64,000 nt of DNA from Dimorphilus gyrociliatus (taxonomy: Eukaryota; Animalia; Annelida). The position numbers and the translations under genes are program-made. Positions 8,604-52,824 of this stretch are shown here, piece after piece. Positions within the stretch are counted from its first letter, which is position 1; every line of letters begins with the position of its first letter. Below the pieces are notes generated by a model. That model made no database searches and was not told the origin of the DNA. It was given only the letters and a program-made list of their open reading frames with translations. The stretch covers positions 1 through 64,000 of the forward strand of contig CAJFCJ010000034.1 in assembly GCA_904063045.1 (NCBI GenBank), written 5' to 3'.

Positions 8604-10833
8604 ATGAAACTCTTACTAGCTCTTTGTCTCATTGGCTTTATTGCTGCAGTTCCCATTCGTTAGTTTTACAAATTTTCAAACTATAACATTTTAATGAAAT
8701 ATTCTTCAAACGTTCGTTTTTCACTTTTCAGAACAACGGACTGTGAAAATTCAAGAATTCAGAAGAGTTAGACGTTCACTCGACGACCATCATGAATTCC
8801 ATGTTGCTATTCCTCTCGAGAAAAGCTCAATCCAACTCCGTCTCAAAAGAAACACCAACATCAACACAAACATGAAAATTGTATTCCACAATGGAGATGT
8901 TGCTGAAGGTTATTTGGATGGAGTTCATGCTTATCAAGATATCAATACTGGTGCCGCCGTTATGGTCACTGAGAAACTTGTTGATGGAAAAGTCAAAAGA
9001 TCTATTGAAGGAAAGTTTGAAAATGAAGGTTTCGAAGTATCCATCGCTCCAAAGAAAGACGGTGATGATGATGAACACGTTCTCGATATTCCATCCTTCT
9101 CTGATAAATCTTTGACTTCCCAACTATCTTCTTTCGAAATTGATCAACTTTCACAAAGAACTAAGAGAGCCGTCTCCAAACCTCACTATCACATTGAGGC
9201 CGCAAACATCATTGATTACACAGTATGGGAATACTTCCTCCAATCAACAGTTACCAATTCCGAAAGCGACGCCGTTTCTGCTATCAGATATCATTACAGT
9301 CATATCATGAACGGAATTGATCTCGTCTACAGAAGAATCAACGATCCAAGATTCATGATGTCATTGTTTGTTAAGAAAATCATGATTGTAAAGGAAAAAC
9401 AAAACTGTCCATTCACTGACGGACCATCTCCTTTGAATATGGCTATGCATAATGGTAGAGAAGTAATCAGTGCGGGCGAATCATTAAATCAAATCTCTCT
9501 CTGGATGGATAACTCCGCCAACACTGGAGGAGCCGACTGGATGGATTGGGATCACACTTTCGTTTGGACTAAAAAAGACATTTACGGATCGAGTCACAGC
9601 ACAATTGGATTTGCCCCAGTAGCAGGAGTTTGTTCCAGAAGAGGTATCTCAATCAACGAAGATCTCGGCATGGACTCTTGGAAGACAGCTGCTCACGAAC
9701 TCGGACACAATCTTGGCTCTCCTCACGATGGTACTGCACCAAATGATGCTTGTGCCGCCAGTGTTCAAAATGTCATGACTCCCACACTCACTTTCTACAC
9801 AATCAATCAATTGAAGAACGCTTTCGTTTTGAGTCAATGCTCAATCAATTCCATCTACAACACAGTTATTGGAAACGGTCAAAATGGATTTAAAAGAGTA
9901 TGTTTGATGAACAGAGTATGTGGACACGACGCATTCAACCAAAACGAAGCCACTGCTGATGAAGTACTTCCAGGAGTCAAATATTCATTGAATGAACAAT
10001 GTACATTGAGATTTGGTAATGGAGCCGTTGCTAACGATGTTGGTTGCGCTCAAAGCGAAAAAGATGATATTTGTCACCGTCTCGTCTGTAGAGTGGGAAA
10101 CTTTTGTAAATTCGAAGAACCAGGAGCCGAAGATGGATCATCATGTGGAAATGACAAAGTCTGTTTGAAGGGACGATGTGTCGAATCTTCTCAAGTCAAT
10201 TTGTACAGCAAAGAAAGTCACAACGCCGAATGTACATCAGGATCAACATTGACAAGAAACGTTCCAAGTGGTTGTACTAATTCGCCAATCAACGTTCCAG
10301 TCAACTATGGAACCCATACAAGAACATTCACCAGCTGTGGTGAAATTATTGGAGAAATGCCACACTTGTGTTTCGGTCAATTCGACCAGTCATGTTGTAG
10401 AGAATGTAGAAGCAAAGGATTGATCAATGAAAACGATGCGGCAACAAGTACAAGTTCTCTTTGTGATCCAAACCCATGTAAGAATGGCGGTGTTTGTCGT
10501 CAATACGGAAACTCTGATTACGTATGCGAATGTGCAGTTGGATTTACAGGAAAGAATTGTAATGGAGACGAAGCCCCAGTTACATCTGCCCCAACAGTAG
10601 CTACAACGACAACAACCGCCGCACCAACAACAACAACAACGACAACAACCGCAGCACCAACAACAACAACAGCAGCTGCAGCATGCATTGATTACAATTA
10701 TTTGTTTAACTTGAGAAATGCAAACCAACAAATTGTTGATCAAGTAACTTGTAGTCAAGGAGCGTCTAAATACGGATCGGCTTTCTGTAACATATTAAGA
10801 GCATATTGTTGTAGTTCTTGTAAAAATTTGTAA
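8604..10833 (+). CDS. Secreted M12B (ADAMTS-like/reprolysin) metalloprotease P1; exons 8604-8658 and 8732-10833
   Basis: Signal peptide MKLLLALCLIGFIAAVPI, 73-nt GT-AG phase-1 intron, furin sites RVRR/RTKR, zinc motif HELGHNLGSPHD with Met-turn VMTP, ADAMTS Cys-rich domain, EGF, Thr-rich linker, two CCxxC-ending PLAC-like modules. Confidence 0.93.
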
Positions 10834-10965
10834 GTTGAAAGTGTATGGTTTATTCTAATAAAATCTTTATATTGTATGAGAAAACTGGTTATCAATTATC
10901 ATTAGAATATATAGGATTGTGAAGGACTGCTGTATTGTTTTTAAGTTGTTAATTGAAGAACTTAA

Positions 10966-11203
10966 TGTTTGAGAACCTGATCGCGATCAGCAGGTGTTGT
11001 TGTGATAGTCAGACATATATATATATACATAAGTATCAAGTCTCATGTGTCATACAACGAGACGTAATCTCGTAGTTACGTAATCACGTGTATCCACACG
11101 TGATAATTATTAGCTTTGGTCATTAGAATACAGCAACCGTTCGATACGGTTACCGACAGTAATTATACATAGTTCGTAATCGCAGAAGAACCGATCTTCA
11201 ACA
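10966..11203 (+). mobile_element. Solo LTR of the BEL family (238 bp)
   Basis: TGTTTGAGAAC...GATCTTCAACA; 5 differences from the LTR at 49964-50201; no PPT before, no PBS after, no target-site duplication (CTTAA / AAGCT). Confidence 0.92.
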
Positions 11204-50201: not shown

Positions 50202-50615
50202 GAGAATCTTTTAGTCTCTGTTCTTCTGTTTATTTCTCAGAGCTCTGTCACTAAAATTGAATTTCTTGGAATGATGTTATAAAATAGTTATAGATTCATT
50301 AACGAGATTTTGGTGTGTTCTGATTCTTCTGATTTTTTGACATAGTGACACTAGCAGATAACAAATAACGAAATCTTACATCTTTATATTACTTCCCTCC
50401 AAAATTGAATGTTTCTTTTCATAATCTACATAACACTTCCTCGGCGAACTACAAAATCTTCCTAAAATATACTTTATCAACTTCACATAACAACAAGTCA
50501 AGATTTCTGTGCAGAATACACTTTTATTTAAAATTCATAACCATTGCTCTCAATGATAATTCTACAATAAAAGGTTTGAATTCATCGGATAACATTCAAT
50601 ATTTACAGCACAAGG

Positions 50616-52824
50616 TTATAAATTTTTGCAAGAACTACAACAATATGCTCTTAACATGTTACAGAAAGCCGATCCGTATTTAGACGCTCCTTGACTACAA
50701 GTTACTTGATCAACAATTTCTTGGTTTGCATTTCTCAAGTTAAACAAATAATTGTAATCAATGCATGCTGCAGCTGCTGTTGTTGTTGTTGGTGCTGCGG
50801 TTGTTGTCGTTGTTGTTGTTGTTGGTGCGGCGGTTGTTGTCGTTGTAGCTACTGTTGGGGCAGATGTAACTGGGGCTTCGTCTCCATTACAATTCTTTCC
50901 TGTAAATCCAACTGCACATTCGCATACGTAATCAGAGTTTCCGTATTGACGACAAACACCGCCATTCTTACATGGGTTTGGATCACAAAGAGAACTTGTA
51001 CTTGTTGCCGCATCGTTTTCATTGATCAATCCTTTGCTTCTACATTCTCTACAACATGACTGGTCGAATTGACCGAAACACAAGTGTGGCATTTCTCCAA
51101 TAATTTCACCACAGCTGGTGAATGTTCTTGTATGGGTTCCATAGTTGACTGGAACGTTGATTGGCGAATTAGTACAACCACTTGGAACGTTTCTTGTCAA
51201 TGTTGATCCTGATGTACATTCGGCGTTGTGACTTTCTTTGCTGTACAAATTGACTTGAGAAGATTCGACACATCGTCCCTTCAAACAGACTTTGTCATTT
51301 CCACATGATGATCCATCTTCGGCTCCTGGTTCTTCGAATTTACAAAAGTTTCCCACTCTACAGACGAGACGGTGACAAATATCATCTTTTTCGCTTTGAG
51401 CGCAACCAACATCGTTAGCAACGGCTCCATTACCAAATCTCAATGTACATTGTTCATTCAATGAATATTTGACTCCTGGAAGTACTTCATCAGCAGTGGC
51501 TTCGTTTTGGTTGAATGCGTCGTGTCCACATACTCTGTTCATCAAACATACTCTTTTAAATCCATTTTGACCGTTTCCAATAACTGTGTTGTAGATGGAA
51601 TTGATTGAGCATTGACTCAAAACGAAAGCGTTCTTCAATTGATTGATTGTGTAGAAAGTGAGTGTGGGAGTCATGACATTTTGAACACTGGCGGCACAAG
51701 CATCATTTGGTGCAGTACCATCGTGAGGAGAGCCAAGATTGTGTCCGAGTTCGTGAGCAGCTGTCTTCCAAGAGTCCATGCCGAGATCTTCGTTGATTGA
51801 GATACCTCTTCTGGAACAAACTCCTGCTACTGGGGCAAATCCAATTGTGCTGTGACTCGATCCGTAAATGTCTTTTTTAGTCCAAACGAAAGTGTGATCC
51901 CAATCCATCCAGTCGGCTCCTCCAGTGTTGGCGGAATTATCCATCCAGAGAGAGATTTGATTTAATGATTCGCCGGCACTGATTACTTCTCTACCATTAT
52001 GCATAGCCATATTCAAAGGAGATGGTCCGTCAGTGAATGGACAGTTTTGTTTTTCCTTTACAATCATGATTTTCTTAACAAACAATGACATCATGAATCT
52101 TGGATCGTTGATTCTTCTGTAGACGAGATCAATTCCGTTCATGATATGACTGTAATGATATCTGATAGCAGAAACGGCGTCGCTTTCGGAATTGGTAACT
52201 GTTGATTGGAGGAAGTATTCCCATACTGTGTAATCAATGATGTTTGCGGCCTCAATGTGATAGTGAGGTTTGGAGACGGCTCTCTTAGATCTTTGTGTGA
52301 GTTGATCAATTTCGAAAGAGGATAGTTGGGAAGTCAAAGATTTATCAGAGAAGGATGGAATATCGAGAACGTGTTCATCATCATCACCATCTTTCTTTGG
52401 AGCGATGGATACTTCGAAACCTTCATTTTCAAATTTTCCTTCAATAGATCTTTTGACTTTTCCATCAACAAGTTTTTCAGTGACCATAACGGCGGCACCA
52501 GTATTGATATCTTGATAAGCATGAACTCCATCCAAATAACCTTCAGCAACATCTCCATTGTGGAATACAATTTTCATGTTGGTGTTGATGTTGGTGTTTC
52601 TTTTGAGACGGAGTTGGATTGAGCTTTTTTCGAGAGGAATAGCAACGTGGAACTCATGATGGTCGTCGAGTGAACGTCTAACTCTTCTAAATTCTTGAAT
52701 TTTCACAGTCCTTTGTTCTGAAAAGTGAAAAACATTTGAATGATATTTCGTTAAAATTTCCAAACTAACGAATAGGAACTGCAGCAATAAAGCCAATAAG
52801 ACAAAGAGCTAAGAAGATTTTCAT
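50616..52824 (-). CDS. M12B metalloprotease P6
   Basis: ATG at 52824, signal MKIFLALCLIGFIAAVPI, shorter intron, intact exon 2. Confidence 0.93.

Follow-up and report, generated by a model that had tools for sequence, protein, structure and literature searches.

Positions 1–64000 of contig C34 of the Dimorphilus gyrociliatus assembly (77.9-Mb, 349 contigs), a stretch of 64,000 nucleotides (nt) referred to below as the window, carry six intact two-exon genes (P1–P6) that are predicted to encode an ADAMTS-like secreted zinc metalloprotease. The cluster is organized around a block of ∼2.3 kb with 97–100% identity lying within unalignable DNA, as seen by self-BLAST and a six-way alignment that included 2–2.5-kb flanks. 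Concerted evolution by ectopic (interlocus) gene conversion is very probably the best explanation of the cluster. The evidence that carries this reading is the identity of silent sites and of the intron, an internal converted tract in the otherwise diverged copy P2, mutually incompatible variants among the five close copies, and a second, unlinked gene pair with the same anatomy.

The six copies and the homogenized block

The first-pass annotation of this DNA had described a six-copy array, and six intact genes with long open reading frames (ORFs) of 680–741 amino acids were indeed found; the outer coordinates given there fall on the ATG codons of P1 and P6. The genes, from ATG to stop, are as follows.

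P1, 8604–10833, + strand: exon 1 8604–8658, intron 8659–8731, exon 2 8732–10833
P2, 24111–26277, + strand, diverged member: exon 1 24111–24165, intron 24166–24223 (58 nt), exon 2 24224–26277
P3, 27377–29606, − strand: exon 1 29606–29552, intron 29551–29479, exon 2 29478–27377
P4, 31807–34036, − strand: exon 1 34036–33982, intron 33981–33909, exon 2 33908–31807
P5, 41975–44200, − strand: exon 1 44200–44146, intron 44145–44077 (69 nt, in frame), exon 2 44076–41975
P6, 50616–52824, − strand: exon 1 52824–52770, intron 52769–52718 (52 nt), exon 2 52717–50616

The layout is common to the copies: an exon 1 of 55 nt encoding the signal peptide (for example MKLLLALCLIGFIAAVPI), an intron of 52–73 nt (GTTAGT...CAG) and an exon 2 of 2,102 nt, shortened to 2,054 nt in P2, which has a 48-nt deletion in the threonine (Thr) tract. 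On the 5′ side of every copy the 5′-end alignment contains a CAGCTG-type motif, a TATAAAA box and a short 5′ untranslated region (5′UTR). The 3′UTR is ∼30 nt long, and AATAAA follows the stop codon by 20–23 nt in five of the six copies.

Exon 2 of P1 and P3–P6 differs at 11–33 positions per pair (98.4–99.5% identity) and contains 43 variable sites and no indel, so that the near-identity described by the first-pass annotation, including the length of the ACA/Thr tract, was reproduced. The remaining parts of the alignment were as follows.

121 nt before the ATG: 33–45% divergence among P1 and P3–P6, except that P1 and P4 share this stretch; P2 versus the others, 35–46%
Exon 1: 9–13% divergence among P1 and P3–P6; P2 versus the others, 27–35%
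Intron: 0–2 differences among P1, P3, P4 and P5; P2 versus the others, ∼43%
Last 47 nt of exon 2: 2–13% divergence among P1 and P3–P6; P2 versus the others, 6–13%
First 60 nt past the stop: ∼50% divergence among P1 and P3–P6, except that P3 and P5 share 48 nt; P2 versus the others, ∼50%

The P6 intron lacks 21 nt that are present in P1, P3 and P4. The CAGCTG and TATAAAA motifs remain aligned in the diverged promoters, and the promoter, exon 1 and 3′UTR are best read as diverged homologues and not as unrelated DNA. Beyond −122 and +60 there was no residual homology above shuffled controls in the 1.3-kb upstream and 0.9-kb downstream flanks, with the exceptions of P1/P4 upstream and of a 72-nt stretch at 82% identity downstream of P3 and P5.

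Proper alignment thus left the promoters (33–45%) and the 3′UTRs (∼50%) far more divergent than the exons. The collapse of identity at the stop codon was borne out, although divergence has reached 2–13% within the final 47 nt of exon 2, and the four post-stop strings quoted for it are all present. That signal exons, promoters and 3′ flanks have diverged holds in general; it fails for a 6.3-kb inverted duplication that contains P1 and P4 and for the first 48 nt past the stop of P3 and P5. The first-pass annotation had limited homogenization to the coding exon; in P1, P3, P4 and P5 the intron belongs to the block as well.

Synonymous divergence (dS) among P1 and P3–P6 is 0.02–0.07, compared with 0.25–0.30 in the unconverted parts of P2. 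Selection on the protein alone is insufficient to explain the block because silent sites and the intron are also ∼99% identical, and a reading by pure selection was rejected. Variation in exon 2 is densest at the ends, with eight variable sites in the first 150 nt, eight in nt 1951–2100 and none in nt 1051–1500. Such end-heavy variation is expected if the margins of a homologous block are seldom covered by conversion tracts.

P2 as a partly converted member

The clearest single tract lies inside P2.

24355–25501, + strand: converted tract (exon-2 nt 132–1278), with two private differences in 1,147 nt compared with 78 in the other 907 aligned nt

Compared with all five other copies, P2 differs at ten sites in nt 1–131, at two in nt 132–1278 and at 68 in nt 1279–2102, where the 48-nt indel also lies (Fisher P = 3e-26 for the tract against the remainder). 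A two-breakpoint maximum chi-square scan picked the mismatch cluster at the Thr tract and not this tract, so the tract as observed was assessed with the Fisher test. In the centre of P2 the dS to the other copies is 0.02–0.06, whereas it is 0.25–0.30 at both ends, where the nonsynonymous divergence (dN) is ∼0.065. The centre of P2 can be assigned as a conversion tract of ∼1.15 kb, because a ten-fold step in silent divergence occurs at two points within one gene under the same selection. The tract is nearest to P5/P6, which are on the opposite strand and 16–26 kb distant.

The first-pass annotation had included P2 in the homogenized array. This is correct for exon-2 nt 132–1278 only; both ends are diverged and carry the 78 private differences. 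Even these 'unconverted' ends were probably homogenized at an earlier time, and the family is old, because the promoters are more diverged than a dS of 0.27 predicts and flank homology has gone. P2 has the appearance of a copy on its way out of homogenization.

Mosaicism among the five close copies

All 43 variable sites in exon 2 of P1 and P3–P6 are biallelic and 27 are informative. They support seven different splits of the copies, compared with the two that a tree of five sequences allows, and 147 of the 351 site pairs fail the four-gamete test (Hudson–Kaplan Rm = 7, a minimum of seven recombination events). Compatible sites are clustered along the exon (P = 0.009–0.027 with a statistic resembling the pairwise homoplasy index, PHI), and the copies share long identical runs (P = 0.0002). 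The signal for the split {P5,P6} occupies nt 65–782 and that for {P3,P4} occupies nt 1574–1622. P3 and P4 are identical over nt 1005–2062 and have 14 differences before it; P1 and P6, which are on opposite strands and 42 kb apart, are identical over nt 783–1997.

The particular reshufflings described in the first-pass annotation were recovered. All four combinations occur for NIL/NML with CCSSC/CCNSC (nt 2063 versus nt 2083–84) and for the synonymous pair CCT/CCC (in SPLN) with GCG/GCC (in SAGE; nt 701 versus nt 743). P1 and P4 differ at four sites (8238, 8360, 8550 and 8573) in the ∼840 nt upstream compared with 20 inside exon 2, and in the TSC..IGE patch (nt 1574–1622) P1 agrees with P5/P6 and P4 with P3.

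The variants comprise 35 synonymous and eight nonsynonymous changes (81% synonymous; P = 8e-17 versus random placement). Because of this excess, and because transitions outnumber transversions by 34:9, they are regarded as real evolutionary differences and not as read errors. One group of variants is private to P4.

32904–33220, − strand: P4-private cluster of seven substitutions, all synonymous, in exon-2 nt 689–1004 (316 nt; from the alignment)

When this cluster was polarized with paralogues on contigs C11 and C26, four of the seven sites matched C26, at large distance. No donor for the P4-private variants was found in the assembly, in which no copy outside the window is more than 93% identical. 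The patch either is an old one of the P4 lineage that escaped homogenization or came from a copy that is allelic or missing from the assembly.

A second, unlinked locus

Two further members of the protease family form an inverted pair, 42 kb apart, on contig C11.

1188530–1190424, − strand: first member of the C11 pair
1230404–1232298, + strand: second member of the C11 pair (the pair comprising loci L007/L008 and L021/L022)

Only three mismatches separate the pair over ∼2.27 kb, from the middle of exon 1 through the intron to the last sense codon. The stop codons themselves are unlike (TAG versus TAA). Homology persists, with divergence, in the promoter, the 5′UTR and the first 25 nt of exon 1; the 3′ flanks are unrelated. 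By this pattern the C11 pair qualifies as an independent, unlinked case of conversion bounded by the coding sequence. Since the same anatomy recurs there, a regular biological process is indicated rather than a local accident.

Proposed mechanism and its limits

In the reading that we favour, an old family of six linked paralogues would be evolving in concert. Repair of double-strand breaks with a paralogue as template would copy stretches of intron and exon 2 between copies, in both orientations and across up to ∼42 kb. The claim that conversion acts across both orientations is supported by the silent-site and intron identity, the P2 tract, the incompatible splits and the C11 pair. Tracts would start and resolve only in sequence that is still nearly identical, and purifying selection would keep the coding sequence alignable, while the UTRs, promoter and intergenic DNA would drift and gain indels. 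The limits of the homogenized block, the stop codon on one side and the vicinity of the exon 1/intron junction on the other, would follow from this. P2 would be escaping, its ends (with the 48-nt indel in the Thr tract) being out of exchange and its central 1.15 kb recently converted. Repair of this kind, the direction of copying and a continuation of the process to the present are all inferred from the pattern of identity.

The first-pass annotation had gone further, with a protein kept uniform for dosage while the regulatory flanks diverge. In this adaptive version selection would set the conversion boundaries, a uniform protein being favoured for its putative dosage benefit and conversions into the promoter, signal exon or 3′UTR being eliminated on account of distinct regulation of the copies. 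The boundaries do match the coding sequence in two independent loci, even to the differing stop codons of the C11 pair; the six ORFs are intact with low dN/dS, and no copy has lost the core promoter motifs. Against this, a passive model predicts the same boundaries together with the observed rise of variation at the ends of exon 2, and the neutral intron is homogenized as well. Transfer into the flanks is, moreover, tolerated, because that intron is homogenized and because P1 and P4 have a common promoter and P3 and P5 a common start of the 3′UTR. We therefore regard the adaptive version as unlikely: passive limits, in which conversion needs homology and purifying selection keeps it only in the coding sequence, suffice.

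An assembly or polishing artefact was the next alternative considered. Here the copies would truly be more diverged, and their identity and mosaicism would have been made by self-correction, consensus, polishing and haplotype merging. The assembly was derived from PacBio RS II reads using PBcR, Quiver, Pilon (101-nt paired reads), HaploMerger2 and SSPACE-LongRead (PMC7854359). The reads were continuous long reads (CLR), filed as raw data under PRJEB37657, and the 101-nt reads used for polishing had 298-nt inserts. This pipeline speaks for such an artefact, and so do the surroundings of P1. P1 and P4 lie in the arms of an inverted duplication, of which one arm directly adjoins a scaffold gap.

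3888–4530: scaffold gap of 643 N, directly adjoining the P1-side arm
4531–10863: P1-side arm of the 6.3-kb inverted duplication, with degraded Pao/BEL sequence and P1; 98.8% identity to 31777–38136
31777–38136: P4-side arm, pairing with 4531–10863

The arms are 99.5% identical outside exon 2 and are separated by a spacer of 20.9 kb, and the 4.2 kb upstream of P1 duplicates that of P4. Within the P1-side arm, 4531–5816 has ∼35 one-base deletions relative to its twin at 38136–36850, and the following 2 kb has only eight substitutions. The former bears the signature of a low-quality, poorly supported contig end.

Several observations weigh against interlocus conversion as read here, or limit the detail in which it can be read. 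The 5′ part of P1 may be misassembled as a chimera, because its arm adjoins the scaffold gap and starts with the ∼35 one-base deletions; the sequence upstream of P1 (and perhaps the first half of exon 2) could be an allelic or duplicated P4 arm joined via a repeat to the true 3′ end of P1. Without P1, 15 of 19 informative sites back one split and the PHI-like P rises to 0.17–0.25, so the fine mosaic rests largely on P1. Where copies are already at least ∼97% alike, the pipeline can blur their variants or exchange them between copies, and the phase of single variants carries no guarantee. GC-biased conversion gave no signal: P2 has a weak base (A or T) where the five close copies have a strong one (G or C) at 38 sites, compared with 29 of the opposite kind, and the GC content at third codon positions is the same for P2 and the five copies (0.27–0.29 in the 3′ third). 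Finally, the evidence base is one assembly and the paralogues within one species. The caveats concerning P1 and the pipeline touch the fine phase only; they reach neither the contrast between block and flanks nor the P2 tract.

Taken as a whole, the artefact is distinctly improbable. Pipelines mix only near-identical copies and cannot turn a divergence of 9% (the 3′ third of P2) or 40% (the promoters) into one of 0.2–1%. Nor can they make identity change at matching landmarks of the gene in two loci that are unlinked. The 81% of synonymous variants and the transition:transversion count of 34:9 imply that true paralogous differences survived the pipeline. Typical P6-C4 reads are longer than the 2.3-kb unit and so able to anchor in unique flanks.

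Very recent duplication of gene bodies, or a mobile or transduplicated cassette of 2.3 kb, would dispense with conversion altogether. The common unit length, the unrelated flanks beyond about −120 and +60 and the Pao/BEL pieces that adjoin P1, P4 and P6 are in keeping with it, but it is hardly credible: a fresh copy would carry promoter, exon 1 and 3′UTR at 99% too, and whole-unit copying cannot create the internal tract of P2. The homology is graded and not sharp-ended, with exon 1, 5′UTR, TATA box and E-box at 55–90% and a short 3′UTR with aligned AATAAA, and the retained intron rules out retroposition; a mobile cassette or retrocopy origin was excluded on these two grounds. An event that replaces only intron and exon 2, within homologous flanks that were already there, is by definition gene conversion.

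The protease and its family

The exon-2 ORFs were used as queries in Pfam and PDB searches. P5 matched Reprolysin_5, _2, _3, _4 and Reprolysin (M12B), ADAMTS_CR_2 (E = 1.5e-14) and EGF (E = 4e-9), and the same set of domains applies to P1. The zinc motif HELGHNLGSPHD, of the HExxHxxGxxHD type, is present in all six copies, and the propeptide ends in RTKR or RSKR, an RxKR furin-type site. The order of domains is signal peptide, propeptide, catalytic domain, ADAMTS cysteine-rich module, EGF, Thr-rich linker and a C-terminal module with six cysteines. The closest solved structures are the catalytic and disintegrin-like domains of ADAMTS-5, -1 and -4 (PDB entries 2rjq, 2jih and 2rjp; E = 3e-16 to 3e-11), the alignments extending through the disintegrin-like/cysteine-rich module.

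No TSP_1 match was obtained for the 741-amino-acid ORF in Pfam at E ≤ 0.01, and the stretch from the end of ADAMTS_CR_2 to just before EGF gave no Pfam match at E ≤ 10. The C-terminal six-cysteine module likewise had no Pfam match even at E ≤ 10, and an identity as PLAC or ShK is not claimed for it. The worm protease resembles the ADAMTS proteins in its M12B HExxHxxGxxHD domain, its cysteine-rich/disintegrin-like module and its RxKR propeptide site. It differs in that ADAMTS proteins are defined by a thrombospondin type-1 repeat, in place of which it has EGF, the Thr-rich linker and the six-cysteine tail. From these matches the product is classified as an ADAMTS-like secreted M12B zinc metalloprotease and not as an ADAMTS proper.

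A genome search placed at least 15 loci of the family in the assembly, on contigs C34 (the window), C11, C26, C38, C60, C67, C99 and C136; elsewhere in its 77.9 Mb no copy is more than 93% identical to those of the window. The nearest relatives outside D. gyrociliatus have 25–34% identity, except for one 2.1-kb metagenome contig (L023) at 72%, the single contig returned by a metagenome scan. The C26 paralogue corresponds to the NCBI D. gyrociliatus protein P0001 with 100% identity across all 700 residues, and only this copy turned up as a protein in a search of a large database. Public protein records seem to lack the six window genes and the C11 pair, perhaps as a result of repeat masking.

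Other features of the window

The window is AT-rich, with a GC content of 26–31% in intergenic and ∼40% in genic DNA. Two further features lie between P5 and P6.

45633–45691, − strand: exon-2 relic of ∼60 nt, 93% identical to the copies, adjoining the Pao/BEL retroelement
46068–50211, + strand: Pao/BEL-type retroelement (RVT_1, Peptidase_A17; Pfam, self-BLAST)

The relic probably derives from a seventh copy that an insertion or deletion destroyed. Degraded Pao/BEL relatives lie upstream of P1 (4531–8250) and P4 (34390–38136), with 92% identity to the 46068–50211 element in the longest common stretch, and a 238-nt piece just downstream of P1 (10966–11203) is 97.9% identical to 49964–50201 at the 3′ end of this element. 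Unrelated genes occur within and beside the array at 16600–22920 (−), 55398–56078 (+) and 58017–61496 (+). Between P1 and P2 these comprise exons of a leucine-rich repeat and rhodopsin-type G-protein-coupled receptor (LGR-like), and after P6 a second G-protein-coupled receptor exon and an ATP-binding cassette transporter.

Significance and comparison with known systems

A literature search returned no paper linking Dimorphilus to gene conversion in such a family. The case is a clean, large, multi-copy example of a long-known process and involves no new mechanism. Its value is that, in a spiralian whose genome is very compact, one locus displays all stages, namely homogenized copies, erosion of the edges at both ends, the half-escaped P2 and a possible palindrome in P1/P4. 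The near-identity of the copies will confound read mapping, expression counts and family phylogenies. If it is true that copy-specific promoters drive different expression, the cluster would offer a natural setting for the maintenance of one uniform protein by conversion under several diverging regulatory programmes. It is a doubtful proposition, although one worth stating, that D. gyrociliatus has an unusually high genome-wide rate of ectopic conversion, with this protease family as its largest visible product in two unlinked clusters with tracts trimmed to the coding sequence. The case also gives reason to separate conversion from pipeline effects across the whole genome with raw long reads.

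Three known systems are close to the one described here. The primate Y chromosome contains large palindromes with arm-to-arm conversion. P1 and P4 resemble these in lying in near-identical inverted arms of 6.3 kb, but the distal end of the P1 arm is of poor quality and located at a scaffold gap, and the arm itself may represent an allele or a duplication made in assembly.

The palindromic Hsp70 pairs of Drosophila undergo rapid gene conversion, in the account given by PMC3924832 (Bettencourt & Feder, 2002). They share with the worm genes the multi-copy, inverted arrangement of nearly identical coding units with common silent variants. Hsp70 is intronless and its high-dosage expression is documented, whereas dosage in the worm genes is a guess.

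In the palindromic Amy pairs of Drosophila concerted evolution is confined to the coding region, again as reported in PMC3924832 (Shibata & Yamazaki, 1995). In both systems inverted, linked paralogues for secreted enzymes under purifying selection have homogenized coding and silent sites and independent flanks. The worm cluster differs in having five to six copies where Amy has two; these occupy both orientations across 44 kb and are interspersed with retroelements and unrelated genes. The worm tract also contains an intron, and in P2 one member has been caught half-way out.

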